DNA of 33,000 nucleotides from Octopus sinensis (lineage: Eukaryota): positions 53,782 to 86,781 of the forward strand of contig NW_021832428.1 of NCBI RefSeq assembly GCF_006345805.1, in the 5' to 3' direction. The position numbers and the translations under genes were made by a program. The notes under the pieces are model-generated. The model ran no database searches and was not told where the DNA came from. It worked only from the letters and a program-made list of their open reading frames with translations. How positions within the stretch are numbered: the stretch's first letter is position 1; each line of letters begins with the position of its first letter. This document shows, in pieces, positions 1-28,899 of the stretch.

Positions 1-3000
1 TAGCGGACGAAGCGGACTGCGTTTGGGTGGACTCGACTCATTATTGTGTCGATGGTCTCCTTCAGTCGGTCTATTCTCTTCTCATCTTCCGCCAAACACT
101 CCAGGAAAGTCTGCAATGAACTGTCCCCTCTTACTTCGTGCTTGTCAATGGCCGACAGCAGTTGGTTCTTGTCCTCGCAGGACGGACGCACTCTCAGCAC
201 TTGTTCTGCCACTTTGATCACCTTTCGGGCGTATTCCACTCCCTTCTCCATGTCCTCTGCCTCCACATTACACACCACTCACACCAATTCCACTGCTCGC
301 CCAAGGTTCCTCCCCCTCTCGGCCATCAGTTCACCCACTCGCCCCCACTCACTCCCCACTCTACTTGCCAACTCCCGTCCCATCTCCTCCCTTTTACTCA
401 CACACCCATACTTTGTGCTGTTCTAACAACATTCCCACTGTCTTCATGTCCCCAAACACATTCCCGTTCGACAACAGATACTCCTCCACTTCACACAACC
501 ACGTCTCCTCCAAACACTCTCCTCGGAATATCTCTCCTCCATCCTCCATCACTCCACTCTTGTGCCACTCCACTCGATTCTATCCTTCACCCACACTCAC
601 TACTCGAATGTATTCACAATATTCCATCGCCCTCCCCCATCCCCTCTCTATTTCATCCACCAAACCACCATCCCCTCCATCCTTTACCACCTCTTTTGCT
701 ACCGCCACACATCTCCGGTAATCGTCCTCGTTCAATTTCTCACATTCCCTCTACCATTAGGCCTGCTCATACCTCGAATCCTTCAATCTGAGTCCTCAGT
801 GTGTCCTCATCCGTCGAAAGTGGTTGAATGTGTATGCACGCACAAAGACTGTTCTCCACCCATTCCAAGTGTCTCCTATAGGACAACACGTGGTTGATCT
901 GAGGACATTGATGGGAGAATATACTCTCATAATATTGGACTCCACCCTGTTGGAGTACACTGAGAGCTGAGAGGACCGTGCATCAATCTCCCTTACTGTG
1001 CTTTGCAATGCTCTGTGTTGGGCCAGTTCTTCCAACTCGGCCTACTGGTCAGAATAATATTCAACTTGGAGAGAGTAATACACATTGTACAGACGTTCCA
1101 AATCAGTGTCAGACTGCCACACACATTCCCGACTGAGGAGTACTCGAGTGTATTCCACATTGCTCTACACAATCGGGAATACTCATCACTCTCAGTTTGC
1201 TCAATTCTTGACAAATGTCCGCCCACGAAAAGACCATTTCTTCAAACCGCGAGTCGCATTGGAAAGAACTCACCGAGTCCAGTAGTCGTTCATAGTTTAG
1301 TAACATGGCTGATATGGCGATCGAGTCATCAAGCAAGTCCTGGTAGTCCACTTTGGACTGCTCATTTGCCAAGGCACACTTCAATTCTCTCATTTTCCTT
1401 TCCAAAGTCTGCAGAAATGAGGGGAATGATGAAAACTGATTCCATTTCCCTCATTGCCTCAGTCCTCGACTCAATCACTTGACAGTGTCGAGACAAAGTC
1501 GCGTGACTCCGTTCGAATTCCTGGAGGGCTACTTGATACCTCATTTCCACTCTCCGAACAATCCTCAATGCCGACTCTCCCAAATACTCCTCCACCGAGT
1601 TGAGAACTCTCATCACTTGCTCCATCCCCCTTCTTTGGGACTCGAATTGGGAAAATATAATCTGTGCATATGTTAGAGGGGACTGCCTGTTGGGGGACAC
1701 TCTCCACGGATTGTGTCATGTGCTCATTGAAGGTGCAAATACTGGACTTGACAAATTCAAAAAATGCGGAAATAATGTCCCACACGTGGGCGGTCTCTTT
1801 ATACACGTGGGCGAGTATTCGTGCCCTGTGTTGTGCTTTGTCAGTCAAATTAAGAATGTCTGAATGAGTGAGTTGTGTGAGGACTGCCAGCAAGTTCTGT
1901 GACAGTGTGGGCGTGGACTTACATTGTTTATATTCTGTTCATGTCTCAACAGGTCGGGGTCGATTGGAATGTCACTCTCGACTGCCTCTTTGCACAAATC
2001 GTGTATTTTCTGAATAGTAACGTGTACATCTCCACAACAGTCGAATTGACTTGTGTCTTTGGCCTGCCTGATGTGGTCGAGTTGTCGTTGAAGAACATGA
2101 GCGCATTCACTGTGTGTGCTCAGTTTGCCAATTCGGGCGATATATAACTGACTGAGGGAAATGTTTCTCAGAATGTAGTGAGACTGGGCAGTTCAAATTG
2201 GGGAATACTTGTAGAATGTCATCTCCCTCAGTGTCCCTCAACTCCTGAAGGACTGGATTAATTCGATTGATAATATTCACTGCCTCCCTAAAGTCACCAA
2301 ACCTACATTTAGTGCAATGTTAATACTTTTTAGTCATGGACTGGAGGACAGCGAGGCTTCGGGTGGCCAATTTATTTCTCAATAAAAGTAATCCCCCGTT
2401 CTCGGTGACTCGAAAGGATGCGAGGGTTGTGAATATTCTCAAGAGTTGTGTCACCTCCCTCATTTTGTCCGACATTGCAGCCTCGATAGTCTGTCGTGGT
2501 CAGAGTGGAATATACAGTCATCATAGTCCCCTCGTTCTGTTCTAGTTGGGAGTCGGTCTTGTCCATCCACGCCAGCAGATTGCTCATGCCCGATTGGACC
2601 TATTTGTCGTACTTGTTTCATACTTTATTGACTACTCGCACTAACACATTTTCTCGCACGACTTTCCAACGCTCCAATAACTCCCCACATCCAATGCAGT
2701 CCGACAGATCCACCACAGCCTGAATGGTCACCCAATCCTCACTTTATCCACACGGTCCCGCGCAGAGGACAGTCGTCTCAGTTGTTCTTCCAATGATTCG
2801 TTTAAACCAGTCTGAAACAAGTCGGCAGTTTCCTTGATAATTCTTTCGAGTGGCTCCAGTCTGGGACAGTCACCAACACAGTCAATACTTGGTTGAGTGC
2901 TTTCCTGCCAGACTCGACAAGTCTGCCACCACGCCCTTCAAGGCGACTGCATTGGCCAACACGGCGAGCGCATTATTCAGCAAATCTCCGAGAGAAGGAT

Positions 3001-5720
3001 CGGACTGTCACAATCAGCAGTTCTTAAACTACTTTAATCATGTCCTCGATCTCATTTTTTAGTCTTTCTGCCACTTGCCACTCCTCCCTCACTTGTTTGC
3101 CTATTTCTGCGATTTCTGTGACCACGTCGTCTGATTGGCTGTCAATCCTCGAAGACAGAGCAGACAGATCAGTCCGGAAGAGAATGAACTTGTTTTTTAT
3201 CCGTTCCAACTCGCCTTCCTTTTCTCGACATAGTGTGTCTGCCCGGCGGGTAATTTGTTCTAAACAATCCGCCAATTCTTCGAAGCGGTGGAGAATCGAC
3301 TTGGCTGAACTGGTCGTTGAGGGAAGATAAATGTGACTCATGCAGTTTTCCGCGATTTTGTTGTTGGGCCAACTGGACGTGATTGTGTCCTAAGGATGGG
3401 TTATTGCCAAAGAGACAATTTTAAATTAATAATATATACTTTACCCGATATTTATTTTGAACTTGCTCCACTTTCAAAATGAACTCTCGCTTTCCATTTT
3501 TCATTTTATTCTCCAAATCCTTGACTGAAGACACGTTGCCCGCCTCTTTCTCGATGGACGACAGGAGTGCCTCACAATCCTCAACCAGTCCTCTGAACAC
3601 CTCGCACGACCAGTCTGTGTAGTCCAAGGCTTCCTTCCCAGCGTGGAAGTAGTCCAATGTCTAATTTGAATGAGTTGGCCGACCTTTTGGAGAGTGTGAA
3701 TTAAATTGGAAGGAGGGGGGTGAGGACTATATGTAATGACTGCCCGCCGGTACATGTCCATGTCTCGAATGAGTGACTCGGTCTCCCTCTTTGTCCAATC
3801 ACTCAAATGATTACTTTGCAGTCCCATGATTGGATGCCCCACTCGTCGGCCAACTTGACTAACAACTCAGTCAAATACTGCACGATCAGTTGGCTGCCCA
3901 GAAAGTATGCCACCCCCGAATTGAAGTCATACAACAATTCACATTCCTGTCTCACCATAAAGGAGACCACATTCCGCGAAATGAGGGACTCTGAGAGTAC
4001 AAAGTCCTGCCCGAATATATTAAATTTAGTAATTTCCCCGACACTGCCCTTAGCAAAGGCAGGTCTTGTTGGGAGGGACAGACTGAGTTCATGAATGACT
4101 TGTTGAGGAGACTTGTTGGTGAGTCCCTGGGCGAATGCAGTCAACGTGCCCATTTGTTGATTCCTCAGACAGTATGTTGTGTGGGGACAGAGGGGGGAGG
4201 GTGGGAAGAACGTGGGAGTAACCAAATCAAAGAACAATCGGAGAGTTCGTTTGTTCCACCACCCACGGGGACAGGTGTATACTTTATAGAATGACTCGAA
4301 TGTTTCCTTTATCCCACAGCGGAAGGAAAACCAGGTCATGTTTATCAGAAACGTGAGGAGTGCTTCCTTCAGCGTGATTGACCTGGACAGAGGATAGTCC
4401 CACAATGGTCTGGTCAATGCGAGAGTGAGGCATTGTGTGATGAGGAGGTGGGGGGAACACACATCCCTCAGCACAAAGTCATTCTGACAGGCAGGCAGTG
4501 GGAGTGAGCAGAGGCACTTCCAATGTGCGTGGTAGACGGGGGGCGACAGGCTGTTGTCGAAGAATGTCTTCACAAGAGAGTGGACGTGCTCCAATGACAG
4601 TCTTTCTTCCCCGAAAGCTTCCTGCACTGAGCAAACCCGTCCGTGTTGTCGATGGTCCACAAATACAAACAAGTCCCCTCTCACTTGATAGTCATCGCAG
4701 TCCTCCAAGGGCGGGGGACTGTGTCCTTCCAGTGGAGTGATTTGGGGATTCAGTGTCTCCCAGGACATTTGGGAACAATTCTCCGAAAGGGTTGAGAAGA
4801 CAAGACCAAAGTTTGGTTGTGGGGGTTGTGTGTTTGGTGGGAGGACGACCAAGCGGAGTCTCCTCTGGGAAACCAATTCGGTGGTGGTGGTGAGGGAATA
4901 CGAGTCATTTGGTTGTTTGACCGCAAACAGGTCTTGTCCAAGAATGGCCAAATGTCCTCTGTCTATAGCACACGTGAGGTCGATTGGGGCAGGGAGTGCA
5001 TCCAGTCTCACCTCCACGACCAATCTCTCTCGGAACATCCTTTCGGGCCTCTCGGAAATGGACAGGACTGAATGTGGACTGGAATAAGGAGGACCCTCAC
5101 TTTGTCCAGATGTATGACTTGGAGGCGTACTGTGTGTTGGTGGAGGTGATTTGGACATATCCAGTGGTCATGTTATGAGTGCCCTCATTGCTGTTCTTCC
5201 TGAAGGTTATCTTTTCGTAAAACTCCATCAGTTCTCGTTTGATTCTGCGAATAATTATAAACAAATCAGTCTCGATCGATTAAGCATGTTGCCTTAAGCA
5301 CTCACTCGCTTAGACTCTCGTCTTGGACAAACAGCCACGGAATGGAGATTCTGTCCCCCTTCGCAGTCTCCACCTGCAATGACATTAGGGAGGCAACCAA
5401 GTAGTCGTCGAGTCCATCCATCTCCATAAACTGCACTCGATCTCCCTCCTTGAGTTGACTCTACCAATAAGGCACGACTTCACTTTGTAGTCAACAAGGA
5501 GGCAGAATGATGTGTTCTTGGGACGCAGGTAGTCCATCCGCCTCAGCAGTTGTGTCACCTTCCCTTCCTCTCTTGATGACATCACCTCCTGCAGTGCTGT
5601 CAAATGGTGTGTCAGGCTGTGTCGTATTCTATCCGCCGAGTAACACCCCCTCTCGTACAACTGGGAACTGGTTGTCAATAGTTGTTTCAGGCAGGTCGAA
5701 ATGTGGTTGACTGTCTCCAT
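1..5720 (-). CDS. Large multi-exon SH3 + spectrin-repeat coiled-coil protein (plakin/spectraplakin/spectrin-superfamily-like); 3' end lies beyond the window start
   Basis: Successive minus-strand ORF pieces join in frame through GT-AG introns at 5461-5483, 5374-5397, 5245-5305, 5079-5100, 3789-3814, 3661-3683, 3390-3444, 3005-3032, 2861-2888, 2720-2742, 2600-2623, 2491-2515, 2303-2326, 2184-2208, 1897-1922, 1662-1683 and 1358-1379 (mostly 22-28 nt). The spliced product has spectrin-like helices (QLYERGCYSADRI; LLERWKVVRENV..LLAWMDKTDSQLE) and an SH3-like segment (LVDYKSQLKEGDRVQF..VETAKGDRISIPWLFV). Splicing between ~430 and 1230 is only partly resolved. Confidence 0.7.
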
Positions 5721-5748
5721 TATATCACTTTACCGCAGTTCTTAATGT

Positions 5749-6660
5749 TCACATTTTTATTCCTATAATATTTCTATTCGTTTTTGTATCAATAACCGTT
5801 TTACTATTTGGGACCAATTTTGAATACCACTTCTTTCTCAACCAGTGGAAGGCTGTGTCTACCACATCAAGAATAATGGAACCCCGCAAACAAGTAAATT
5901 GTGAGTGTGCCAATGGATGGCTGTTAAGAAGTTTGTTGTTTTTGAGCATCCTGATAGCACGAGTGGAGATGTAGTCATGGATTAGTTTATTCGCAGTTTT
6001 CCCATTGTTGGTTGAGAGTATTTTTGATAGACATCTACATTGATCGGCCAGAGTAAAAATGATGTGTCTTTTGTTTTCTGGAATAGAGATTTTGTGACTT
6101 GGATCAGAAGAGTCTTGTATTTCCTGTAGGAATTGGAGTCCTCTCATCGTCAAATGGTCATCGACCGGAAGAATACAGGACTCCCAATGAAGATGATCGA
6201 TGGGAGTGGATGCAAGGCAGCCAGTTATTGTGCGTAGCCCTGAGTTTTGGATTCTTTAGAGTTTTTGGAGGTTTGAATGAGACAAGTTCCATGACCATGC
6301 TGGACTAGCATAGTTCATAGATGTTCTGACAAATTGTTTGTAAACCAAAGTGAGGCATTCTTTGGCTTGGCCTTAAGTTTGCCCAGATAAGGCACGTAGT
6401 GCATTCAGTTTTCGTTTGGCTTTGGTGAAAATGAGCTCCACGTGTTGCGTGAAAGATAGGCATTGATCGAATACGACTCCAAGGATTTTCGGGTTTTTTA
6501 TGACAGGAATTATTTCGCCGGCCACATTGAGGACTGGGTTTAGGTTGAATTGTCTTTTATGTGTTTGTGGAGTAACTCATAGAAGGCGTACTCTTCCAGG
6601 GAATTCAAATTATAATCACAAAGGCAGTCTAATCCCTTCCAGAGAAGTACTTATTGTCGC
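5749..6660 (-). mobile_element. 5'-truncated, decayed APE-type LINE (I/jockey group): RT thumb and C-terminus
   Basis: Translation across stops and frameshifts gives KNPKILGVVFDQCLSFTQHVE..YKQFVRTSMNYASPAWS..LRTITGCLASTPIDHLHWE; similar to the copies at 13250-14931 and 27590-28520. Confidence 0.8.
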
Positions 6661-6722
6661 ACAGGACAATCACACACAACCAAAATTAACTAACAACCAA
6701 ATTTATTATCAAAAAAAGAAAA

Positions 6723-6979
6723 TTAGTTGGAGGCATCAATCTCGGACTGAGTCTGCTCGATCATTTCGTTGATGGAATTCTCCATTTCGTCAATCCGTCC
6801 GCCCATTTGGTCGACTGCGAGTCAGCCACGACAATACTTTTGGCCATTATATCCTCGGACATGCTCTCGAATTTGCTCTGCAGTTGTTCCAACAGATTCT
6901 GGATCTCGTTCGACTCCTCCATTGCCTTTCGAGTTTCCTCGTTTATGTCCATTTCTGACTTGTTTCCCGACTCCGCCAT
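6723..6979 (-). CDS. HSBP1: Heat shock factor-binding protein 1 (77 aa, one 23-nt intron)
   Basis: Removing intron 6815-6837 (gtattgtcgtggctgactcgcag) gives ..IQNLLEQLQSKFESMSEDIMAKIDQMGGRIDEMENSINEMIEQ.., matching the HSBP1 family signature. Confidence 0.9.
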
Positions 6980-7130
6980 CCTACTAAACAGAGATCACTT
7001 ATTGGGCATACCACACAACCAAACAACAATTCCTTTATTTTTATGTCATTTCATTATTACTTAATTATTATTCCTTCAAAATAAATATACGACAAAGGGG
7101 ACGAAGGGTGACAAATAATTTTATTATATA

Positions 7131-7740
7131 CAATCAAATCACTCTAAACCGATTCCTATAGAGAGGAGACCGGTATATTGCACATCAAATTTACTTATAA
7201 CGACAAAGTGATATTAATAAAAATTTGTCAATAAGGATTGGCTCGTTTTTAGCCTCGATTTAGCAATCGTTTTATTTTTTGGATAGATCAGTCTGTCGAC
7301 GGGATCGAGTAATGCAGGGTCTTGAATGCAAACAAAGTGGTAGATTTAGCATTTTTTGAACATTTGTGCGTAGTAATTTCTCTATATTTTCTGGCCTGTT
7401 TGCTTATCTGAGTCATCGTCATTATCTTCAGAAGCTGAGACTGTTTGTATTGGCCAACGGGGAATGATTCCTATTCATTGAGATTTTCAGTGGGTAGTTA
7501 AAAGTCCAAGTTGACAAATTCTTCTTCTGTCACGTCATTATCGACTAGTTTATTCATGAGGGATATGAACACTAAATTGTTTGCATGATTGTTGTGTAAA
7601 TTACATTTTTACAGGAATGCCAGACTTATTAAGCAGGGGAAGATTGTGTTTTATTTCACATCTATCTAAGCTGTGCTAATCCATTAATAGCATCTAAAAA
7701 AGAATTTTTGGCAAGTGGTGTCGCAAAAGAGGAACAAGGA
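7131..7740 (-). mobile_element. Decayed pogo/Tigger (DDE_1) transposon, 3' remnant
   Basis: Remnant motifs LDAINGLAQL..TIFPCL, EEEFVNLDF and QSLIDKFL resemble pogo/TIGD C-termini; a TA + CAATCAAATCACTCTAAACCG TIR-like end lies at 7129-7151. Confidence 0.6.
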
Positions 7741-7792
7741 AATATTAAAGCAAATAATTAGGTTAGTCAATTAGTAACATCCGAAATGTAGG

Positions 7793-8596
7793 TCAAAAGC
7801 AATCCTTCCAGCATAGAAGATTGCTTGATGCGGGATATCGGCAGAGGTTGCAATCTATTGTGAGTAAACTAACACACCATAGGCTTCCTCAGTGATTATT
7901 AGTGTTGCGTCTGTTGTTGCAAATGGATCCATTTCTACACTTTTATCAGTTAATTTGATATCTAGCTGATTTGTCACTGTTGTAATCCTTATATTTGAAT
8001 ATATAAGTATACATTATGGGTTGGGACCCATTTGTGAATATGCACATTTTCTGGCCGTCAATAATACTACAAAGTCAGTAAGTTAAAATACCTCATGTAG
8101 AGGGGAAGACTGATTTTTGGCCTCAGGAAAATGGTATTTAATGGCATGTCACTTTAATGTTAGAATAAGATTTGTACAGGCTTAATGATCCGACTAGACT
8201 TGCAAAGGCATCTACGTTCACGTAACGAAGGTCACTACAGGATTGCAGTTCTCTAATGATTCAAAATATTTGAATGTACATATGGCGTAGGTGAATCAAC
8301 CCGTCAAATGAGTTGTTTAGTATTCTCTTTAGCGAGTCTCCACGACAGTGACTAGTGTTAATAAAATGTTGATTACAATTGCTCCAAGTACGTTAAATTC
8401 GAGAATATTTCTCCATTTGGAAATAGAACGTTGCTAGAAATTGCAATTATTGTGTTATGTTCTGCAGCATTTGCTCCATTGAATTCACAGTTTTGCAAAA
8501 CTCTGATTCAAATAAGAAATTTTTCAAAAACTGTTGTGTTAAATCACAGTCTCTTTGGACCACTAAGTCAACCAAAAGTAGGACAAGTGAAAGCAT
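7793..8596 (-). CDS. Putative secreted/surface leucine-rich-repeat protein (~210 aa) with six 23-27-nt introns; one apparent 1-nt frameshift near 8455
   Basis: Introns 8352-8376, 8253-8279, 8152-8177, 8067-8091 and 7988-8012 (all phase 2) and 7855-7877 keep one open frame: IFSNLTYLEQFHCRGDSLKRILNNSFDGLIHLRHIELQSCSDLRYVNVDAFASL. The hydrophobic N-terminus MLSLVLLLVDLVVQ starts at 8596. Confidence 0.65.
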
Positions 8597-8885
8597 TCTA
8601 ATTAAGGCTAATATTTTATTGCGAATAACTCATTGGTTAGACAACAAATAAATTAAAAACTTTATTAACTAAATCCAAAACCGAAAATAATAAGAAATTA
8701 AGTAATTATTGATCCTAGTTTTTGGAAATTTTTCTCATCTTGAGGGGACTCCATAACTCATTATTTCCACATTTACTTTCATGCTCAGAGTCATTTATAA
8801 CTTGTCAATTTGTTTCATCTGGGGTTTTCGCATTATTAGTTTGTCATTGCAAACAACTGCCGTAATGACTTCTTTATTAGGCATA

Positions 8886-9040
8886 TTAATTCCCATTCCT
8901 ATGCTCCAGAACGATGCTTTCTAGTGTCTTTTTCATTACAAATGCCAGAATGTATGTTCTTGTCGGGCCTTGAATAAATAATCTTTCGATATAGGAGATT
9001 GAACACTTTGTAATACTTTTAAACCTACTCCGTCCCTATT
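8886..9040 (-). mobile_element. 3'-terminal fragment of the R4/Dong-like retrotransposon family
   Basis: ITKCSISYIERLFIQGPTRTYILAFVMKKTLESIVLEHRNG aligns with VTRCFKNYMDKLYIEKSTMTYIQSIVLKRTLESMIIEHKHG of the copy at 9612-13116. Confidence 0.75.
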
Positions 9041-9044
9041 CACA

Positions 9045-9215
9045 AAAAGATAGAACACTATTTTTTTCATTACTGTCGTTTAAATCATATATTTTTACTG
9101 GAATGCCACATTTATTAAAGCAGAGAGAGATTGTGTATTATTTACGTCCATCCATGCAGTGCTAATCCACGGATAGCATATAAGAAAAAATTTTAGGCAA
9201 GCGGTGTCGCAGTGG
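9045..9215 (-). mobile_element. pogo/Tigger transposase remnant
   Basis: Diverged ~120-bp direct repeat of ~7611-7735; translates to YAIRGLAL.WMDV....CFNKCGI, the pogo AW..V...I.NCF.K.G region. Confidence 0.55.
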
Positions 9216-9611
9216 TTTCTGTTTCGGAAGCAGTCAAGATGATTAACAAAGGAATTGTAGAGAATTGAGCAAGAGGAGAAATGCCTGGTTTCAATTACCT
9301 ACAAAACACGGATTGGATGCCACCTACGTCGCACCGACTGCTGAAATCGATTGACGAGATGTCTGATAATATAGAATGATTGAGAAGGAGAGGGAAGAAG
9401 TTTGCAGTACTGTGAGCAAGTGTTGGACTGCCCCACCAATCTCACTCACCCGAGATTAGGGTGTAATACAGTCCGACCTTGAATTGGAACACTAAGTGTT
9501 CCAAAAACTGAGGTTTTGTCAAAAAATTAATATCAATATAAATTTAATTAAGACGTTTATTTACGAAACCAAAATTTAATTAAGATTAAAATATTTAATT
9601 AATTAGGACTT

Positions 9612-12600
9612 TCAATCCTGATTGATAGTCTCTCTTCTCCTTTTAGGAGAAGAGTCTGCTGCTTGTTCCTCTTCATTCTCTATCTCTGCGTCGGTTGTTG
9701 TGCGTCTTTTATCTTTGAATGAATTCCTGGCGGCATGCCATTTCTACTAGTTGATCGGTCGCAGAGGTATATTCCTCGCCAGTTATCTTCATTCCATGCT
9801 TGTGTTCAATTATCATGCTCTCTAGCGTCCTTTTGAGCACAATCGATTGGATGTATGTCATTGTAGATTTTTCAATATATAGTTATCCATATAATTTTTG
9901 AAGCATCTTGTGACAACACCATCCCAGGTCAGAACCACAGGAATAATTTTAACTTGGCATTCGTAGAGTAGTGACAGTTCATTTGCAAGGAAATCATATT
10001 TTGAAGTTTCTCAACTTCCACTTGTTTTAAGCGGTCCTGAGATGTTATGCCCACCTCGATTAAGGTTATTTCCTTTTTAATCTTGTCATAAACAAAGATA
10101 TCCGGTTTATTGAAGTTGACTTTATTTTCTGTTATAATTGACGTGTCAACTTTAATTTCTACATTTTGAGTTGACAATATCGACTGAACTGAATGAGTCT
10201 TTAATTTCCTGTTCTTTTTGATTCCATACATTCGACAAATATGAAGATGGACACATTTAACCACCTCGTCATGTCTTCGGAGGTAATCGCTATTGAGCAT
10301 TTTACCACACTGTGTGGCCAGATGATCAACAGTTTGTTTACTTTTTTTACAATGATTGCATAACGGCCTCGTGTTTGCAAAAAACAAATTTCTATCTTGC
10401 AGAAGGCAGTATAATGCTTCACTTCGGGGGCCATTATTTCCTTTGGCTAACCATTCTGAGGAAGTAGAAAGATCGACATTTGATTCATTCAAGCATTTGA
10501 ACATAACAGAGTGTAGTACTTGGACTTTATTTTGTTTAGCAAATATTTTTTCTGAATGTCTTGGAGAAAATTAATATCTATGCTTTCTGTGTCAGCAATA
10601 GCGTATTTAGAGGTAAGAAATCCTGCGATTGTAGTCAAATGCCATTTCTTTGTTTTAATAACTCGCAGAATCCCCGACCTTCGCAAACACACAGCCGACT
10701 GTCTTTCCAAGCTTTTAAGAAATTGCATGAGTATTAATTCGCTCTTGAACGAGATGGAGGCAAGTCCTCTTCCAAAAGTTTTGCGGTCTAAATACAGCCT
10801 TTCTTTATTTGCAGGCTGGAAATGTAACTTGAGTGTCATGAGCAGTCGACGTATTTGTTTATCAATGTCATCAAATTCATATGGCTCGATATTAATTAGC
10901 CCAATATAATAATTATATAGGGACAATGCATATTCATTTATGGCATAGAATAAATTCACCGAATTCAATTTTGTTTTTGACAACATAGTTATTTTTTTAC
11001 ATTCTCCATTATTGAATCCATAACTTTATTCTTGAGGACATTACTTCCTCCATCTTCAAATACTCCCAAATAGCGATATCCATTGATTCCTTCCAAAGTC
11101 TCACAGCATGATAAAGATTTGACATTAGAGGCCGATTTTTCAGAGTTCATCTCCAGGCCAACAATGTCGAAAAATTCTTTAACAGCTTCCACCATTTTAA
11201 TAACAGTGTCTTCTTTGAGAGCAAATATCTTTAGATCGTCAATAAAAAATAGGTGATTGGTAGAATATGTCAGCATATTTAGATCCTCCTGATTAATTTG
11301 CAATTTGGGAAATTTAGAGTTCAGGATCCTGCTTAGGGGATCCATTACCATAACAAATAGCAATGGGGATAATGAATCTCCTTGTAAAATTCCTCGAGTT
11401 AGCTTTATTGAACCAATTTTTCTTCCATCAAGGTGTAGATTTACTTTCCACTTCTTGACTATACTTTTCACAAAGTTAATAATCCAGAGTGGAATTCCAG
11501 AGCTGTCCATTATGTGAAATAAAAATTGGTGATCAACCGAGTCAAAGGCTTTCTTTACATCCACCCAAGCAGAGTACAGACTGTTTTCATATTCCTTGTT
11601 CAAGCATTGATTAATAAATGCTTGCTCTTTCGCACCCTGACATTGCTTTCTGGTTTCGAGTTGATTGTCTGAAATCAGCCCAAATCCATCCACAAAGTCA
11701 AAGAGTTTAGCATTCACACACTTCGTTACAAGCTTGTACAAAGTTGGCATACACGTTATAGGACGTAAATCCTTTGGATTCTCACAATCATCCTTTTTTG
11801 GAATCAAGTAAGTTAATCCCGTGTAAAACCAACTCTCGGGCATGTACTCACCCTTGATTATCCGGATTACTTCATTACACAAGAATTCATGTAATGATTC
11901 CATTTTCTTGATGAAAAAGTTATATGTTCCATCGCATCCGCACGCCTTCCAATCAGGCACATATTTGAGCATATCTTTAACCAACTCATTTGTGAATTGA
12001 GGTTCTATAGCTTCACCACCGGTAGACCTCACATCCACACAATTATACGAAACGTGATCCATATTTCTCTTTCTCCAGACGTCCTCCCAGAATAAAAAAC
12101 ACTCATTATCATCAAAGCCATATAAGGTTACTTCATTATTCGACGATAAGTTTCGGTAAAACCTTCTGCGGTTTAATTCGAAGCACGCATTGTCTTTTCG
12201 GAACTCTTTCCTCGAGTTATAAATGGATATTTGTTTATCTTTAATTCTGATTAGATCATTGATTAAAGTCTCAATTCTCATTAGCCGTAGCGGCAGAGAA
12301 TATCCATTACATTTTTCTTTTCAGATTGAGGTAATGCTTGCCTCGAAAAGGAATTCACTAATTTAATTTCAGCTGCTAATTTCGAAATTTTGTTTTCTGT
12401 ATTTTCCAACCATGTGCTTTTTGTTTTAGGCCTTATAGTTAAGGCCAAATAAGCACACTGTGCAGCATATAATATGTCTGTAATCTGATCCATATTTTGT
12501 GGAAGATTATCTTCTGTAATACGATAAATTGCAGAATTCAATCCAGACAGAATATTAGTTTTCACTTTATTTTTTTGGATTTTTGGGGTAGGTTTTCGAG

Positions 12601-13116
12601 ACTCTCTAGGAATAGATTTGATTCTTTCGAGTTGGACTTTGAGTTCTTCTAGGCAATTCTTGAAGTTAGAAATTTCAATATTCATGTTAGATTTTCCTTC
12701 ACTACAATCGCCTCTTTTCCCTACATTTTGATTCCCATTTAGTGGTTTGACCATTTTTTTAGTTGATATAGACTTGAGCACTTTAAGTATTTTTCATTGA
12801 ACTCTTTCAGAATGAGATCCCAGCCACCTCTAGGCATCCTTCCAAATCTTTCTTTGATAGCATAGAACACCTGTGACACCCATTCAGTCTCAGAGACACA
12901 CTTGACATCCTTAATAATGGCGGACAGGGAATGAAAGTTAGTTGGTGCAGCACGACTTCCAACTGTAGGATTATTGTTAATATTAGTTCTTGTGCCGTTA
13001 TCCAGCCCCAGAGACAACACTCCTGCATCCACTATACTGTTTTTATTATTTGATTCTGCAGAAAGGCCCATGGGATTCGTTTTCTTCTTATTGATAAAAA
13101 CGGACATGCACAACAC
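9612..13116 (-). mobile_element. Near-complete RLE-type non-LTR retrotransposon (R4/Dong-like): RT, CCHC zinc knuckle and restriction-like endonuclease
   Basis: RT motifs DLRPITCMPTLYK, WVDVKKAFDSVDH, GILQGDSLSPLLF and HLFFIDDLK; knuckle CNHCKKSKQTVDHLATQC; RLE KPDIFVYDK..LIEVGIT..EKLQKYD. The ORF is broken by ~7 frameshifts, mostly single-base losses in A-runs, with no internal in-frame nonsense codon evident. Confidence 0.92.
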
Positions 13117-13249
13117 ACAACAACCATATATATATAAATTTAATAATTTAATTAATGCAAAAAAGTCTTAAATATTATTATTTATTAAAAAATAGTCATC
13201 GATCCTTTTTCCATAACCATAATTTTTCTTCAAACTACTAAACACATGT

Positions 13250-14931
13250 AACTATGGAAGGAAGTCTCTTGTCAAGGAAAGAAATCGTCTTAAAAAAGTA
13301 GGGATCCGAACCCCGATGCAAAAATCTGTTTGAAACTGTTGAACGACGAAATAAAAGCTAGTAAATTCAAAACTCAAAGAGCGAAATGGAGGAAAGTACT
13401 TACGTCCCTAAACCGTAATCGGTCGACATCCGAGATCTGGAAATCTATTCGGAACATCTCGAAGGCTAATGAGGAAACACCTGGAGATGACGAATTCAGC
13501 CAAAAAGACCTAAATGCCTTAATAAAATACTACGCGAAAATCTCTTAAAGGATCGTATGAAGACTGCCCCTTCCAAACCGCCGCTAAGGAAGCTGAAAAG
13601 TAAACATTCAACTCATTTCACTGAAAAAGAAGTATTGGAATCCCTACACCAAACAAAAGTAACATATTCACATGGTCCCGACGGCATTCCTATAATTCTC
13701 CTGAAAAACATAGGGAATGAGGGAATCAGTGTTCTCACAAAATCTACAATTGGTCGATTAACTACAACTCAATCCCAACGATTTGGAAATTGGCGAACAT
13801 CCGCCCAATTTTGAAGAGTGGAAAACCAAAACAAGACCCGGCCTCCTTCAGGCCAATTTCCCTATTATGTTCCACGTCAAAAACTCTGGAAAAACTCATC
13901 CTCACAAGAATCATTAACAGCATGGATTCAAAAAAGATTGTTCCACTGCAAGCTTCCTTAGCTCCTTGACTAACTTTATCCGTTCTGGCATTTCGTGCAA
14001 GCCAAGACATCAGAAAACTGTACTTTGTTCGCTGGATATCCACAAAGCCTTCGACGCTGTGCCTAGAAAAAACCTAGCATGGAAAATCTACCAATCAAAC
14101 ATCCCTGAAGACCTCAAGCTCTGGTTGACTAACTTCCTCAGCGGTCGAAGAGGAAAAGTATGCTTTGGAAACATTCGTTCCATTTCCCGTCTATTCCCAA
14201 ATGGTGTACCCCAGGGCTCACCATTATCACCTCTCCTATTCAAATTGTTTACGGCCGATATTCCGACGCCTAATGGCGATCTGCTTCTGGCCTATGCAGA
14301 TGACATTGTATTGGCATCACGGGACCAGAACATCCAAACAGCAAAAGGAAGATTACAACAAAACCTGGATCACCTAGTTGAGTGGTTTAACGTAAACCGG
14401 ATGTCGATCAACACAGAAAAATCTGTCACAACTCTCTACTCCTCAGCCAAAAGACTATCGAAAACTTCAATCGAAGTTGTTGTGGAGGGAAGAGTATTAC
14501 CTTTCAGCAAATGGCAAAAGATATTGGGATTAACTTATGACACGCACATGAACTTCTCTAAACATGTCACAAATGTGCTGAACAAATGTGAAAAGAAAAT
14601 CAACCTCCTGAAATGCCTAACTGGTCTATGGAAAATGGGAAATCACCCTATACTTAAAACACTCTACTCACAGTATATCGAACCATGTATCTCATATGTT
14701 TGTGCCTCATGGGGGCCACTGATTTCGAATACAAACATCCGTAAAATCTCCGCAACCCAGAAAGAAGCTTTCACACTTACCGAAAGGTGGTATACAGGTG
14801 AAGCTATCAACCACCAATCTCTTTCGAAACTCTCATTGAGAAGAATACAAAAGGGCATCAATGGTATAAAGGAACGATCCGCCCTCAACGATCTTGTGTG
14901 GGCTCAAGAGAGCAGCACAGAGCGAAGCTGA
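13250..14931 (+). mobile_element. Truncated APE-type LINE (I/jockey group): linker and RT domain
   Basis: GPDGIP, FRPISLLCSTSKTLEK, LDIHKAFDAV, GVPQGSPLSPLLF, YADD and KILGLTYD motifs, with frameshifts. Confidence 0.9.
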
Positions 14932-14974
14932 GAGCAATGATCAAATTCGTCAGGATCACCTAGTTAGTTTTTTT

Positions 14975-15218
14975 TTGGTTAACGGTGGTCTTTGGAATAA
15001 ATTTGGATTTGATTTTGATTTGAACAAATTTTGTCTGAAACAGTAAAAATCATTTAACAAAATTGGAGCTATGTCTAGAACTGATTCTTCCAATTCATTC
15101 ACTTTTGTTACTACTTCTTTGACCGTAGTCTGTTTATTTTGCATACCACTGTAAAAAATTTCTTCATTATCGCTGCTTTCCGTATTTTCCAACAATTCGT
15201 CTACAACTTGTTCTATAA
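14975..15218 (-). mobile_element. pogo-like transposase C-terminal/3' region fragment, inverted relative to the right end of the composite
   Basis: Acidic tail IEQVVDELLENTESSDNEE..TVKEVVTKVNELEE; 14975-15014 is a 39/40-identical inverted copy of 16655-16694, which runs into the pogo right TIR. Confidence 0.55.
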
Positions 15219-16644
15219 CAGGGGTGTCAAACATGCGGCCCTCAGCGTACTTTACCAAACATAAGTGCGGTCTGATTTAATGGCTATAAAATGCAAAAAA
15301 TTATTTTTTATTTTTTTACATTTAATTAAAATTTTTAATTGTATTTTTAAATCGTGTTTGTTAATGTCACGTGCTTCTTCTGGAATAAAATAGAAACGCT
15401 CCTTGAAAGATGAACGGAGAGTGTTTCAAGATAAATGGGAACTTCTCTATTTTTGCACAATGGTTGATGGAAAAATACATTGTTTTATATGTAACACGAA
15501 GATTGAACACGAGACTAAAAAATTGCAATCTTTGCAACTTTAGCTTTCTCGGCAAAGCCATTGGCTTCTTCTCGAAGATCATTCTGGAAGCAAGAGCAAT
15601 GGCTATTCCTAAACGTCCACCTCTCGCTGCTTGTAGTCGAAGGATATCCGGTCTGGCCAAGGAGAGAAATCGCCTCAAAAGGTCAAACCGATGTCTTCTG
15701 ACACTTAAACAAGGAACTGAAGTCCAATGAACTCAGACACACCTATTTGAAATGGAATCGAATTCTTTCTACCGTGAACCGCAATCGTTCAACGGGTGAA
15801 GTGTGGAAAGGCATTCGGCACGTGGTCAGGGGGGACGCTCCCGAACCTTTCGAAGATTTTGATAAAAAAGACGTGAACAACCTCATGAATTTCTATGCGA
15901 AAAATGCACATAAAGATCACAGGAAATCCGACTCACTCCCCTCCAACAGAAGCCTAAAAAAACGGGCTGAACCGCTCCTCCTCTCGGTAAAGGAGGTGGA
16001 AGATTCGGCGTCGAAGGTGTCAGATTTCTAACAGCAATCTTCAACCATTCTATTAACAACAACGTAATTCCGGCTTTATGGAAACAGGCCTTAATAAGGC
16101 CGATACTGAAGCCTGGAAGACCAAGAGGGGACTCGCTTGATGAGGTCTATCCCGGGTCATCATTTGCTCATTTTTATTGTATTATTCATCAGCAATATTT
16201 GTGCTCAAAGATATTAAAAATGGAATCGGTGTTAAAGGAATTTCAAGAAAGATTTAATGATTTTTCGTCTTTTGAACAACAATTTTTACTATTCGCATCA
16301 CCATTCTCTTTTAATGTTTCTAATGCAGATGAAAGTTTACAAATGGAACTAATCCACTCAGATTCTATATTAAAGCTAAATATTTGGAGGTTAGAATACC
16401 TGCTTTCTTTTCATATCTTCCTGGAAAGTTTAAAAACTTAAAAAGTTGTCAATCCTCTGGAAGCAACTCTCACCAAAATTAAAAAGCGATAATTGAATAA
16501 TTTAGTAACTAAATTATTAACTAAAACTAAATTTTAGTTTCTCTTATTTTGGTTATTCATCATAATAAATATCAGAACTAATCTTCCCTTAATGAGAAAT
16601 ATTATAAATGCGGCCCTCAAAGCGAAATGAGTTTGACACCCCTG
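15219..16644 (+). mobile_element. Internally deleted hAT element (Charlie/Buster/GTF2IRD2-like)
   Basis: TIRs CAGGGGTGTCAAAC / GTTTGACACCCCTG; N-terminal remnant KDERRVFQDKWELLYFC..IHCFIC; C-terminal remnant LKEFQERFNDF..FASPF..LQMELI. The flanking 8-mers differ (TTCTATAA vs GCCTAGAA). Confidence 0.85.
15540..16145 (+). mobile_element. LINE fragment (EN-RT linker) nested in the hAT element
   Basis: KWNRILSTVNRNRSTGEVWKGIR..LWKQALIRPILKPG parallels KWRKVLTSLNRNRSTSEIWKSIR..IWKLANIRPILKSG at ~13380-13830. Confidence 0.8.
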
Positions 16645-17057
16645 GCCTAGAATAAATCAAATCAAAATTTATTCCAAAGACCACCGTTAACCAAAGTCAT
16701 TTTAAATGAAAACCTCGATTTGGAACCTAGAATCTAGGCAGAGATCCTACAAAGTGTTCCAAAAACTGAGGTTGTTCCAAAAACTGAGGTATTCCAGCCC
16801 AAGGTCTGTTCCAAATCGAGGTCGGACTGTACTACAAAACAGTCGACGACCATCTCTGCTACAAGACGGAAATAGTCGACCCCACCAAGAAAATCTCCCA
16901 TTTTACATGTGTAGAGGAGGTGATACAAATCTTAGAGGCCTATTCGTAAGCACATTAATTGTCTCTGTTCTCTCTGCAGCCCGACAACCTCAACCGACTA
17001 GGGCCTTTCTTCAACTTGGCGGTTTTTCACTGTGAAGTGAAGGAGATGCCTCACAAG

Positions 17058-18225
17058 CAGTGTTCCCTCTAAGCGAGTGGTAGCTATGCGCGCTGGGCAC
17101 ATTGCATTGTGCAGCGTTATAAGTGACGTATGCAAAAAATTTTGGGGGGGGAAAATTTTACAATTAAAAAACAATGGTTAAAAAATAGGTCTAGTCAATT
17201 GGATATTCTTCTGTTTTTATTTTGTATCCAAAATTTGTATACTCGATCAAGATCCACTGTATTCCCACTTGTTAAATAGAACTTAATTTGCATGATCATC
17301 TCCAAATGGTCAATCTCAAGTCTATTACGTAGTTTTAGTTTTGATACAGTTCATCAAACTAAATCCACGTTCAGCATCAGCACTCGACGCTTGAAATGTG
17401 CCACAAATATCCACAAATGTTGCAGTGGCTGAAAATTTTTTCTCCGCTATAAATTACATCTTCAAATGTTTTCAAAGCACCAGAGTGCATTTTTTTCTTT
17501 TAAAATAAACTTGAGATCTGTATATTCCGACTGCAGTTTTATGAGTGGGACTTCTGAAGAGAGTAATTTTCATATTTTTTCGCTAATTTAATTATCTCTC
17601 CTCTTTTCCAAATTCAAAGTTGTCTGATTTTGAATTGCTTGAGTGTCAAATGCTACCATTCTCTTAATTCGTCAGCTGGAAATCTTTCTTGTAAATGCAG
17701 ATAAACATGCTCGATAAAGCATAGGATTTCATCTGTATTTGTATCTCCATAACCAGTTGTTGATAACACATCTTCACACTGTCACTCCAGTAAATTTCAT
17801 TCCATCCAATATTGAGATTTCAGCTTCGAAATTTTTGCTCTGGCAAACTGTACAGCTTCTATGGTCGATATACGCTTCTTGGAAAACTGTGCACAAATCT
17901 GCTAATTCAGCCAAAATTTCATTTAAGACAGTTAAAGCAACATGAATAAGAGGATTTTGAAGTTGTTTTAAGCAATATTTTGCAATCGGATCATTTCATC
18001 TTCAACCTGCTTAAAAGAAGGAGAATTTTTCTTAAGTCTCATATCAATATTATAGACACGTTTTCGTTTTGAAATGAAAATAAGAATATATAAATTCATA
18101 AAAAAATTAAAAAAAATAGCAATTTTTAATATTATACTTTCTACTGCGCAGAAAAAAATTTCGCTGCGCAGCAAGGTGCAAACTGCTGCGCGGCCGCGCA
18201 CGCGTGCAGCTTAGAGGGAACACTG
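17058..18225 (-). mobile_element. Non-autonomous hAT element with perfect TIRs and an 8-bp TSD
   Basis: 16-bp TIRs CAGTGTTCCCTCTAAG / CTTAGAGGGAACACTG; TSD CTCACAAG at 17050-17057 and 18226-18233; minus-strand remnant of the hAT dimerization motif ASSADAERGFSLMNCIK. Confidence 0.92.
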
Positions 18226-18649
18226 CTCACAAGACAATAGAAATGGCGGAACAGTCCGTGGCGACACCAAAGGAGTACTCCACAACAAACACTCCATTTT
18301 CATTGCCAAACTCATCCTGGACAATATATCCGTTGGCCCCCATTCTTATATTCACTCAATATTTCACAAGCTGAACACATCCCACTTCATTATCTCTTCT
18401 TTGCTGTCGATCCGCCTCTTCTGCCAGATTCATAGGCCAGGATACAGCTTTCGTGTGTTTGACAAGTTCCACTGATGTCTCGTGGTGGCTACTTCCTTCA
18501 TTCAGTCGCTTATTGATTGCCCCAACATCCATTGCAATACTTGTACGTGATTCGCCGCCGTGGCTGAGAGTTTATGTTTTTTTAACTGCTGGTGATTCAC
18601 ACACTTGTCATGGAAATTCTACGCTCCTTTTCTGATTTTCCTTGGACAC

Positions 18650-19430
18650 AAATGTGGTTCATTTCAGCAAAGTCTGGAGGAAACAAGGTCTTGACTTTCC
18701 GGAAGATCAAATGTCTCAACGAAACTGGGATCGAATAGGATGCAAGCAAACTTTCAATCTGCTGCTCGAGCATTCCCAAACGCTCTCCTCGACGATGAAT
18801 CGGTAAAAATTGGAATCTCTCTGCGCCTCGAGCTAAGGCAATGTGTCCCGCACGTGTATCGTTGTGGCTGCCCTGTTGAGCCTTTCGGTTTGCATCCTTT
18901 ATCGTGCAGGAGGAGTGCCGGATGGTTTCCAAAACACTCTGCTTTGAATGACATCATACGGAGGGCCCTTGATTCGGCGGGATTTCCTTTGGTCCTCGAA
19001 CCACCGGGTCTTGACCGCGGTGACGGGAACGTTCTGTTGGGATGACCCTTTTCCTTTTGAGGGCGGAAAAGTCTTCGTATGGGATGCAACTTGCTGGGAC
19101 ACTTTTTCTGCTTCACATTTAACTTTGTGTGCTCTAGAGGCTAAATCTGCTGCTAAGCAGGTTGAAGATTTAAAGCTAACCAAATATTCTGCCATTTCGG
19201 ATGAGTTTTTCGTGTTGTCGATAGCGGTGGAGACGTCGGGTGCTCTTGATCCAAAGACGGAAAAATTTCTCTCAAGCTCAAGGTCAAAATCTCAATGCGC
19301 ACTCACGATCCTCGGAAGGTGGACTGGCTTTTCCAACGGTTCTTGATCGCCGTTATCCAGGGGAACAGTTTGGCGATCCGTCAGGCCGTATGCCTTTTCA
19401 TTGATTAATCTTTTAACACATTCTTGGGTT
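18650..19430 (+). mobile_element. 5'-truncated CRE-like RLE non-LTR retrotransposon (3' end)
   Basis: CGCPVEPFGLHPLSC..HSALNDIIRRAL..LEPPGLDRGDG..VWDATCWDTF..IAVETSG..IAVIQGN: the zinc-knuckle/RLE C-terminus typical of the CRE clade. Confidence 0.8.
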
Positions 19431-19488: not shown

Positions 19489-19560
19489 TCCCGCGACCCG
19501 GATTCGAACCGGGGACCTAAGGATCTACAGTCCTCCGCTCTACCACTGAGCTATCACGGG
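19489..19560 (-). tRNA. tRNA-Tyr(GTA), intronless
   Basis: The reverse complement folds into a cloverleaf: CCCGTGA/TCGCGGG acceptor stem, GAGGA-CTGTAGA-TCCTT anticodon arm, GGTTCGAATCC T arm, followed by TTTT. Confidence 0.95.
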
Positions 19561-23227: not shown

Positions 23228-23675
23228 TTATATTTCCACGAAACGATTTTCTTGATACCTTGTCCAACCTCCCCTGTTGCATGCTAAGTTTCTCATTGCG
23301 TCCAGATCATCCCCATTTTTAAGCTTGCGGTTGATTGATTTGAGGTCAGCATCCAGCACCTCCGGTAGAGTAATGCGCGGGCGTCCCCAAAATTTCTTTC
23401 CACTAGCGGCAAAATATTCTTCCATAGCCAAATTTGCGGGTGACGTCTGGTCCATCCGTAGGACATGTCCGAACAGTCTCCATCGGGCTTCCATCACATC
23501 CAGAATCACAGGTTGCGCTGAGCATTTACGGTAAAGTGCCCCGTTGTTGATCCGGGTCGGCCATTGTACCCCACATAATATACGCAGTTGTCTTCGGTGG
23601 AAGGAGTTAAGGTTTTTAATTTCGGAAGCAGAGATCCCCCAACAGGAGGAGTTGTATAGAACAATGTACAATGTA
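23228..23675 (-). mobile_element. RTE-like LINE, 3'-terminal segment
   Basis: VLYNSSCWG..SFHRRQLR..RWRLFGHVLRM..GRPRITL; homologous to 30570-31035. Confidence 0.85.
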
Positions 23676-25118
23676 CGCTGTAAAGACCAATGCCATCCCG
23701 ATGTCCCTGCAATGGCTGCAAAACAGAAGGCTCTCCGACTCTCGCTAGAGAACACAACGGATATGGTCAGAAAACTTTCTTACAATCGGAACGCACCAGG
23801 ATACAGAAAATGATCAAAAAGTTAAACAGCGAACACATTGCAAACGTTTTGGATGCCAGGCTAAAAGAAGTGGAGAATTTAAAGGATTGTGCACAGATGT
23901 TCTTAGCAATGAGGTTGCTTAAGAGGAGGAAGCAAAAGATTAAACTAAAGATCGAGGACAACAACGGAAATATGATTTTTGGTGCTGCGGAACAAGCAGA
24001 ACTTATTGCTACTCATTTTGAGCGACTTTTTAATGTTGACGGGGAAAAGGTGGACCTAATCACTAGTAATCCGGCAAACCTGATAAATGAAATCACGGTG
24101 GAAGAAGTTATGAAAGCAACGAATAGACTGAAAAGTAATCGCTCTCCGGGACCGGATGGTATAAGTGCTGAGTTACTGAAATAAGGTCCTAAAACACTGA
24201 TGGAAATCATGGCCAAAGTACTAAACAAAATGTTTACAACTAATGATCTTCTTCCTTTGGGCAAAGGAATTCTGGTCCCGATTCAAAAACCAAATAAGAA
24301 GATGGGCTCTGTGGATAACCTGCGACCAGTCATTCTACTCAATACGCTGAGAAAGGTCCTTGCTCTCGTGGTTCTAGACCGTATACAAGAGCCTGCGAAC
24401 GAATTCCTGTCTTTGAACCACAGTGGGTTCAGGACGGGTAGATCTACTGCTGATGTGGTCTGGGGACACAGATGGCGTTGCGCTACTTGCCAAAGATTCG
24501 AGAGTGCGACTACAATTCTAGGGATCGACATGTCGAGAGCCTTCGACACAATTCGCCGAGGAAAACTTATTAGTGTTTTGCGGGGATTCCTCGACGGGGA
24601 TTGCGTCAGGATGATAGAAGTCCTATTGTCGAACACGGAATTAAAAGTACAAATTGGGAGTACGTCATCCAGGAATTTTTCGACGACAGTGGGTACCCCT
24701 CAGGGAGACTCCCTTTCCCCTTTGCTGTTCGTGATATACCTGGAGGCGTGATCTCAGGCTCTTTTATAACGGACAAATCACCGAAATTGTATACGCTGAC
24801 GATGTGGATTTTGTATCACACGACACAGCAGCCTTGAGGCGGTTACTTGATGTTGCACCAGCAGAGTTTGGAAAATGGTTCCTCACTGTGAACACAACCA
24901 AAACGGAAATCACGGAAGTCGCACGCATGAGTTCAAGACTAGATGATGAATGGAGACATTCCAGAAAACTGGGCACACTCCTCGGAGATAGTGAGGACAT
25001 TACCCGAAGGAAAGTACTATCGACGGCCGCGTTGAACAGGCTAAAAACGGATTGGGTGGCTAACAGGCCGGTAACGATTGCGCTTCGTTTGTGCCTCTAC
25101 AATGCATTCGTTCTATAA
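23676..25118 (+). mobile_element. RTE-like LINE, linker and RT segment (inverted relative to the adjacent 3' segment)
   Basis: SPGPDGI, LRPVILLN, GIDMSRAFDTI, GTPQGDSLSPLLF and YADDVDF; ends at LYNAFV. Confidence 0.9.
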
Positions 25119-25302
25119 ACTACCATTTATCATTTGAACTTTTGATACAAAATCAGTCAAATTCAAAATCTTGGACTGATTGATCTCCCGAATATGCTGG
25201 ATAGAATAATGGCAGTTCAGTTAATGTAACAGGACTTGTCTGAAGGAAAGGATATGAGCAATCATAACCCGAACATATTAGCGTTAATAGTGAATTAGTG
25301 TG

Positions 25303-25955: not shown

Positions 25956-26034
25956 TGTAAAGTAGGATGGTTATCATGACAACTAGAACAGGGTGGCCAC
26001 AATAAAACAAACAAGAAGCCAAATAAAGAATGGA

Positions 26035-28520: not shown

Positions 28521-28554
28521 TTACTATCTGTGAACTGTGAGTAATCCACAGCGT

Positions 28555-28860
28555 AACTATAGCACCATTTGTACTAACATTAAAATGTTGTGAGTAAATT
28601 CTAGAAACATCACTGCGACTAAATCAGTCTGAGGGACCCAAACGAGCTTACATTCAGTCGATGGTTGTCAGGAAAACATTGGAGAGTATGGATGGGGACA
28701 TAAGCTGGAATGATGCCGCCGGAGCAACACCGAAAGACTCAGCTTACAAATAGAGCAACGGAAGAATCTTTGCTAGATGAGAACGACAACAAAAGAGGCC
28801 AGGCCTATGAGATGGATAAGTATGCTTATTAAGAGATTGGCAATCTAGAAAGAGAAAGAA
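28555..28860 (+). mobile_element. 3' end of the R4/Dong-like family, probably continuing the copy at 26990-27560
   Basis: EGPKRAYIQSMVVRKTLESM matches TYIQSIVLKRTLESM. Confidence 0.65.
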
Positions 28861-28899
28861 AATTGATTTGAGATAAATTAAAAAGTACTAATAAAAAAG

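Follow-up and report, generated by a model that had tools for sequence, protein, structure and literature searches.

The closest described counterparts of the locus analysed here are the processed pseudogenes of human YWHAZ (14-3-3 zeta), of which nine copies, 78-97% identical to their parent, are scattered in the genome (PMC11049341). The locus lies in the window, the whole 33,000-nucleotide stretch of Octopus sinensis DNA that was analysed, and resembles the human copies in being a 14-3-3 copy, probably intronless, without the role of the parent protein. The two would share their mechanism, in which LINEs retrocopy an abundant housekeeping mRNA. The octopus relic differs from the human copies in several ways: its identity to canonical 14-3-3 proteins, whichever is taken, is only about 33%, the N-terminal part is missing, no poly(A) can be seen, and two DNA transposons cut through it. 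No paper linking 14-3-3, cephalopods and pseudogenes was found in the literature.

The two insertions have their nearest relatives among non-autonomous DNA transposons. The first has duplicated a TA target and ends in terminal inverted repeats, as Tc1/mariner elements do; the length of these repeats (about 22 nt, starting CAGT), the short subterminal repeats and the lack of a transposase are as in non-autonomous members, from which it differs in having been enlarged to 7.4 kb by nested LINE and other insertions. The second has duplicated 8 bp of its target and has short terminal inverted repeats, as hAT elements do; its perfect 17-nt repeat starting CAG, its subterminal repeats rich in GC and its body of about 1.2 kb, shortened by internal deletion, are those of a non-autonomous hAT. 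Unlike hAT elements with their enzyme, it has no detected remnant of a transposase or dimerisation domain, and its assignment to hAT therefore draws on the duplication length and the structure of the ends alone.

The locus is very probably a long-dead 14-3-3 pseudogene, likely a retrocopy, that was later hit by two DNA transposons. LINE machinery would have copied a 14-3-3 mRNA back into DNA and placed it in the genome, leaving a copy that had no introns and was cut short at the 5' end. Neutral decay would then have introduced at least four frameshifts and four stops and lowered the amino-acid identity to about 33%. Two DNA transposons of the cut-and-paste kind entered the relic afterwards. 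One, of Tc1/mariner type, went into a TA within the codons of helix 5 and would itself later have been filled by LINEs and another inverted-repeat element; the other, a non-autonomous hAT-type element, went in between helices 7 and 8 and duplicated 8 bp of its target. The locus is ordinary genomic debris, neither a working nor a newly split gene, but it offers a tidy example of nested transposons dating events in a repeat-rich cephalopod genome and illustrates how an empty site can be read back by means of an insertion's target duplication.

Pieces of the relic and the insertions between them

Piece A of the relic (9243-9468, plus strand) consists of four segments and contains three changes of frame. 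The first, at 9243-9323, corresponds approximately to zeta residues 29-55 by tblastn, by frameshift-aware alignment and by our own 14-3-3 HMM; it reads ...EEKCLVSITYKTRIGCH against EERNLLSVAYKNVVGAR in zeta, with an in-frame TAG at 9258-9260. The second (9326-9376, approximately residues 57-73) is shifted by 2 nt relative to the first and reads TSHRLLKSIDEMSDNIE against SSWRVVSSIEQKTEGAE, in an alignment that scores 53 against 29.0+-4.5 for shuffled sequences, none of 300 of which reaches it. The third lies in a third frame at 9370-9444 (approximately residues 82-108; HMM positions 93-106), where YRMIEKEREEVCSTVSKCWTAPPIS aligns to 29 letters of 14-3-3 zeta. The fourth, SPEIRV* (9446-9468, approximately residues 110-117; asterisks mark stops), ends in a TAA at 9464-9466, directly before the left TA copy of the first insertion at 9467-9468. 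Most of 9221-9451 is homologous in frames other than the one that the sequence-only reading used.

Piece B (16832-17057, plus strand; approximately residues 117-187) was recovered by tblastn, Pfam PF00244 and our own HMM, and reads YYKTVDDHLCYKTEIVDPTKKISHFTCVEEVIQILEAYS*AH*LSLFSLQPDNLNRLGPFFNLAVFHCEVKEMPHK, with TAA at 16947 and 16956; the left copy of the target site duplicated by the hAT-type element takes up its final 8 nt (17050-17057). Piece C (18234-18334, plus strand) begins TIEMAEQSVA..., approximately residues 188-197, and continues after a frameshift as DTKGVLHNKHSIFIAKLILDNISV (18263-18334), which aligns to zeta residues 204-227. In a restricted test the score of piece C was reached by 30 of 1000 shuffles and by 15 of 297 random windows (p about 0.03-0.05), and its best alignment varies with the query; its membership in the relic is weakly supported.

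The first insertion occupies 9469-16829 (strand not assigned); it is 7,361 bp long, Tc1/mariner-like and composite, and the DNA flanking it is colinear with 14-3-3 across the join. Its right TA copy lies at 16830-16831, and its terminal inverted repeats (9469-9490 and 16808-16829) match at 22 of 24 positions with the TA included. The repeat, TACAGTCCGACCT[T/C]GA[A/T]TTGGAAC, has these two matches only in the window, and the subterminal 18-nt repeats read TGTTCCAAAAACTGAGGT. The ten largest internal ORFs yielded no DDE/D transposase and only RVT_1 from nested LINEs; the element is non-autonomous. Within it lie a non-LTR retrotransposon on the minus strand (9929-13116; reverse-transcriptase ORF 10989-12281, Pfam RVT_1 E=5.6e-30), a fragment of a second on the plus strand (13280-14931; reverse-transcriptase ORF 13966-14931, RVT_1 E=1.3e-23) and a third element (14974-16695, strand not assigned) with inverted repeats of 42 nt, 98% complementary to each other, at its ends. 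The order of nesting is inferred.

The second insertion (17058-18225, strand not assigned) spans 1,168 bp and is hAT-like and non-autonomous. It is bounded by the perfect inverted repeat CAGTGTTCCCTCTAAGC (17/17; 17058-17074 and 18209-18225), which has these two matches only in the window, and by a perfect 8-bp duplication, CTCACAAG (8/8; 17050-57 and 18226-33). Its longest ORF is at most 77 amino acids, the four ORFs compared with transposase families gave no match, and no hAT transposase or dimerisation domain was detected in it. Elsewhere in the window Rfam gave two tRNA-type matches, and in the locus itself none.

These boundaries bear out the sequence-only reading that the insertions are two and precisely defined, with exact edges, TA and CTCACAAG duplications and inverted repeats unique in the window. 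Joining 9468 to 16832 does read ...EIRV*YYKTVDDHLCYKTEI, and excising 17058-18225 together with one CTCACAAG does read ...EVKEMPHK-TIEMAEQ, as had been proposed; the "20/20" colinear match reported at the first join comprises 8 identities in 20. The rejoining in frame holds locally, but no open reading frame is restored across the stops and frameshifts. That the sites appear to rejoin in frame follows from the excision itself, because the sequence from before the insertion comes back once the element and one of its two target copies are taken out.

Age of the decay and source of the copy

The insertions are younger than the decay of the relic, since the transposon ends are near-perfect (17/17, 8/8 and 22/24) and far less diverged than the relic itself. 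The pseudogene state, taken together with these little-diverged ends, therefore places both insertions in DNA that was already dead. The proposal of a gene split by insertions is accordingly not supported: what they interrupted was a pseudogene with stops, frameshifts and an undetectable N-terminus.

Four stops in about 165 codons already imply that neutral decay had reached some 0.2 substitutions per site. If such decay had run down to 33% identity, a mean of 7.6 stops (range 3-12) would be expected, and the 4-5 observed fall at the low end. This shortfall is one of the observations that would suit an unlikely alternative, in which the source of the relic is a divergent family of 14-3-3-like paralogues specific to octopus or to cephalopods, with most of its distance from canonical 14-3-3 gained while still functional, and the copy died recently. 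Identity to the 322 canonical 14-3-3 proteins compared is uniformly 31-35%, with molluscs no nearer than vertebrates and no candidate parent above 35%; because identity is equally low to all of them, the parent could be a divergent paralogue. Helices 3, 7 and 9 also keep their hydrophobic pattern. Against this history, the stop count lies inside the neutral range, and no member of such a family appears among the 322 proteins, for which the representative listing gave the 150 most canonical of 13,195 family members; the best 120 matches to a gastropod 14-3-3 query include no octopus entry. The phosphopeptide-binding residues of 14-3-3 zeta, K49, R56, R127 and Y128, are half lost: the relic keeps K49 and Y128, whereas R56 aligns to H (at a frameshift) and R127 aligns to C. 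An ordinary copy decaying neutrally would account for the divergence about equally well as a fast-evolving subfamily. That the relic is a dead member of a cephalopod-specific 14-3-3-like family, with living members elsewhere and an altered phosphopeptide-binding groove, is a doubtful proposition, and the locus would gain biological interest only if intact, similarly divergent paralogues exist.

As to how the copy arose, the 14-3-3 zeta gene of Aplysia has introns after residues 110, 155, 210 and 243. The relic is contiguous at positions 110 and 155, and apparently at 210, as judged against this gastropod reference; the DNA of the third segment of piece A is unbroken across the first of these intron positions, and neither insertion coincides with any of them. 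Because the DNA is unbroken across mollusc 14-3-3 intron positions, the relic is probably a processed, retrocopied pseudogene, to the extent that the Aplysia gene represents the introns of the parent. The structure of the parent gene in octopus may differ, and neither a poly(A) tract nor a matching target duplication was found in 8300-9240 or 18335-18700, which is as expected if the copy is old; both points would favour a non-processed duplicate, copied at the DNA level with its introns deleted or from an intron-poor parent. Such an origin seems improbable to us, as the DNA crosses at least two Aplysia intron positions without a break, a dead copy is not likely to lose several introns precisely, and the window has no second 14-3-3-like sequence nearby. 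On its 3' side the relic's DNA leads into another retroelement-like ORF.

Coding state and 14-3-3 ancestry

The relic carries disabling mutations, and the locus encodes no 14-3-3 protein. Four in-frame stops are independent of the insertions (TAG at 9258; TAA at 9464, 16947 and 16956), and at least four frameshifts occur, at about 9324, at 9370-76, at 9445 and at 18262. The N-terminal helices were not found upstream of 9243, and the first 28 or so residues are undetectable. An uninterrupted frame of about 245 residues is thus absent, broken by the stops, the frameshifts and the two transposons in addition to the missing residues 1-28. The O. sinensis record VCDQ01006524.1 (GCA_006345805.1), 99.5% identical to the window, has no gene call over piece A. 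In annotation the locus calls for masking or a pseudogene label and should be left out of 14-3-3 family counts.

A live gene, with its stops read as sense codons or spliced out in small introns and with both transposons intronic, is given almost no credence here. All four stops are TAA or TAG, as an alternative code with these as sense codons would have it, and a 34-nt GT..AG stretch (16946-16979) spans two of them. Splicing it out would throw the reading out of frame and abolish the RLG..NLAVFH motif, while the unspliced DNA keeps the exact 14-3-3 spacing, with 16 residues on either side, and the intron was rejected. The alternative code was likewise rejected: the frameshifts persist under it, and ORFs of 451 and 430 amino acids elsewhere in the window are free of TAA and TAG, which argues for the standard code. 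The positions of the insertions off the introns of the family and the lack of a gene call in the public record also speak against a live gene.

The flanking DNA derives from 14-3-3, in agreement with the sequence-only reading. A tblastn search with 14-3-3 zeta matches 16830-17069 at E=1.8e-5. In frameshift-aware alignment, piece A scores 51 against 31.5+-4.4 for shuffles, piece B scores 59 against 28.1+-4.3 and the joined flanks score 74 against 33.9+-4.6 (8.7 SD above), with none of 150 shuffles reaching the score in each case; the joined flanks align to residues 82-193 in a single alignment that stays continuous over both empty sites. Among the 1,740 stop-free pieces of the window, piece B ranks first with our own HMM (E=9e-4) and the first segment of piece A ranks second (E=0.22, HMM positions 44-62). 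The HMM positions are met in order on one strand (44-62, 93-106, 126-146 and 167-199), so that the locus shows colinear similarity along the helical repeat.

The Pfam check suggested by the sequence-only reading gave a partial answer. With stop-free pieces searched separately, PF00244 matches 16959-17057 only, at 14.6 bits (E=0.025) and below the gathering cut-off of 33.2 bits, and the other 11 stop-free stretches tested gave no match; because there is a single weak match, Pfam on such pieces cannot decide family membership. A PDB sequence search with the best piece returned 14-3-3 sigma alone (E=1.3). Chance similarity in AT-rich intergenic DNA, to which these sub-threshold Pfam scores and the single matching piece might be credited, has a negligible probability and was rejected, given the four colinear pieces in the right order on the same strand, the placing of both top-ranked pieces in the locus, the failure of every shuffle of A, of B and of the join to reach the observed score, and the family-wide tblastn matches, in which 250 of the first 266 14-3-3 proteins tested match piece B with E values down to 2e-7.

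14-3-3 ancestry and condition of the relic

Three pieces of the window (A, 9243-9468; B, 16832-17057; C, 18234-18334), together called the relic, flank two insertions and derive from 14-3-3. In a tblastn search of the raw window, human 14-3-3 zeta (query sequence 98-100% identical to database entries; residues of the relic are numbered as in this protein) matches 16830-17069 over residues 118-191 (E=1.8e-5, 34% identity), with weaker colinear matches at 9243-9317, 9379-9414 and 18263-18334, the frame differing each time. Among the 266 14-3-3 proteins fetched first, 250 match piece B (best E 2e-7). Six-frame translation of the window gives 1,740 stop-free pieces, all of which were searched with a family HMM built from 81 of the fetched proteins; its top match is 16959-17069 (E=9e-4, HMM positions 167-199) and its second best 9261-9341 (E=0.22, positions 44-62), while 9370-9456 (positions 93-106) and 16788-16946 (positions 126-146) are likewise colinear. 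In a frameshift-aware alignment piece A scores 51 and piece B 59, with shuffle means of about 30 (SD about 4.4), and neither score is reached in 150 shuffles. Piece C alone is weak: its score in a test of the C-terminal residues is reached by 30 of 1000 shuffles and 15 of 297 random windows, and its best alignment varies with the query. When the flanks are joined in silico, solely to display the empty sites, a single alignment of residues 82-193 spans both junctions (score 74 vs 33.9±4.6 shuffled). The tblastn match and the shuffles of pieces A and B bear out the 14-3-3 resemblance noticed in an earlier sequence-only reading; the 20/20-position match it described comprises 8 identities in 20 residues. 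The official Pfam search, restricted to stop-free pieces, gives a single match, to the 14-3-3 family PF00244 named by that reading (16959-17057), but at 14.6 bits it falls far short of the 33.2-bit cut-off.

The relic is not a gene, and the description of a gene split by insertions does not hold, as its reading frame is disabled quite apart from them. In-frame stops that owe nothing to the insertions occur at 9258 (TAG) and at 9464, 16947 and 16956 (TAA), the frame changes independently near 9324, 9370-76, 9445 and 18262, and residues 1-28, sought upstream of the relic, were not found. Insertion 1 did not make the TAA at 9464, since this stop precedes the TA target. A 34-nt GT..AG stretch (16946-16979) was rejected as an intron; its removal breaks the frame and ruins the best-conserved motif, RLG..NLAVFH, and the unspliced DNA retains the exact 16-residue spacing of 14-3-3. 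No gene call covers piece A in the record of VCDQ01006524.1, an Octopus sinensis contig (GCA_006345805.1, an assembly assigned to this species in a genome paper) whose fetched part is 99.51% identical to window 1-14753 (31 mismatches and 19 small gaps over 14.8 kb) and shares with it piece A as well as the leftmost 5.3 kb of insertion 1. On this evidence the window represents a different haplotype or assembly, from the same species or a sister one.

The locus is previously unannotated and a very familiar kind of thing. The human YWHAZ processed pseudogenes are nine intronless copies, 78-97% identical to their parent (PMC11049341); compared with these, the octopus locus is older, far more decayed and carries nested transposon insertions.

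The two insertions and their age

Both insertions are real and have exact boundaries, as the sequence-only reading proposed. Insertion 1 (9469-16829, 7.4 kb) is bordered by TA at 9467-68 and 16830-31 and terminates in inverted repeats of TACAGTCCGACCT[T/C]GA[A/T]TTGGAAC that match at 22 of 24 positions; this end sequence has two matches in the whole window, both its own ends, where chance predicts zero. It contains subterminal 18-nt repeats, no transposase was found among its ten largest internal ORFs, and its end structures are those of a Tc1/mariner-type element. Nested material makes up most of its length, with two non-LTR retrotransposon copies, each with a reverse-transcriptase ORF (Pfam RVT_1, E=5.6e-30 and 1.3e-23) and a third element of 1.7 kb with 42-nt inverted repeats (14974-15015 and 16654-16695, 98% complementary).

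Insertion 2 (17058-18225) has perfect 17-nt inverted ends, CAGTGTTCCCTCTAAGC, found nowhere else in the window, and lies within a perfect 8-bp duplication, CTCACAAG. None of its ORFs is longer than 77 aa, and the four tested against transposase families gave no match; its end structures are those of a non-autonomous hAT-type element.

When neutral decay was simulated from a mollusc 14-3-3 coding sequence, 4-5 stops per 165 codons already implied about 0.2 substitutions per site, and an identity of about 33% implied about 0.5, a level at which 7.6 stops are expected (range 3-12). Across the 25 paired positions of the hAT-like ends and duplication there is no difference, while the Tc1-like ends differ at two of 24. 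Because the transposon ends are so much less diverged than the relic, both insertions are much younger than its decay; both transposons landed in already dead DNA.

Origin and parentage of the relic

Four introns interrupt the 14-3-3 zeta gene of Aplysia californica, following residues 110, 155, 210 and 243. The relic DNA is unbroken at positions 110 and 155, and apparently also at 210, and neither transposon site coincides with an Aplysia intron position. This continuity points to a processed pseudogene, probably 5'-truncated, in which a 14-3-3 copy would have been made by the LINE machinery abundant in the octopus genome here and lost its 5' end by truncation. A poly(A) tract and target duplication were looked for around the relic and not found, and the absence of introns is judged against the Aplysia gene; we therefore only infer the retrocopy step.

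Identity to every canonical 14-3-3 is flat at 31-35%, molluscs being no exception, and the stops are somewhat fewer than neutral decay predicts on average. The parent itself could therefore, though this is unlikely, have been a member of a divergent, lineage-specific 14-3-3 paralogue family.

Surroundings of the relic

The window is transposon-rich animal DNA. Directly downstream of the relic, 18700-19400 (+) holds ORFs that overlap one another and have a retroelement-like C-terminal region rich in cysteine and histidine; this sequence probably replaced or buried the original 3' end. Further non-LTR retrotransposon fragments, RTE-like from ORF translations judged by eye, lie at 23228-25118 and 27983-31035 on both strands. 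A CFA20-domain (CFAP20-like) exon at 25284-25715 (-, E=2.7e-44) and RRM-domain exons at 25983-26754 (-) belong to real genes, and the window is therefore not wholly a repeat desert. There is a clean tRNA-Tyr(GTA) gene at 19489-19560 (-, 71.5 bits), and a tRNA-like sequence at 31122-31202 (+, 52.5 bits), assigned no anticodon by ARAGORN, may be the head of a tRNA-derived SINE. A 451-aa ORF at 3803-5158 (-), carried on VCDQ01006524.1 too, is an orphan gene or else an over-called ORF: it has no significant Pfam family, and a comparison with 5.8 billion proteins matched it to nothing but the 321-aa gene call of this ORF. The first 1000 nt are low-complexity sequence. Their plus strand is strongly C-rich (GC skew -0.43), and ORFs rich in proline, serine and histidine overlap there in several frames.
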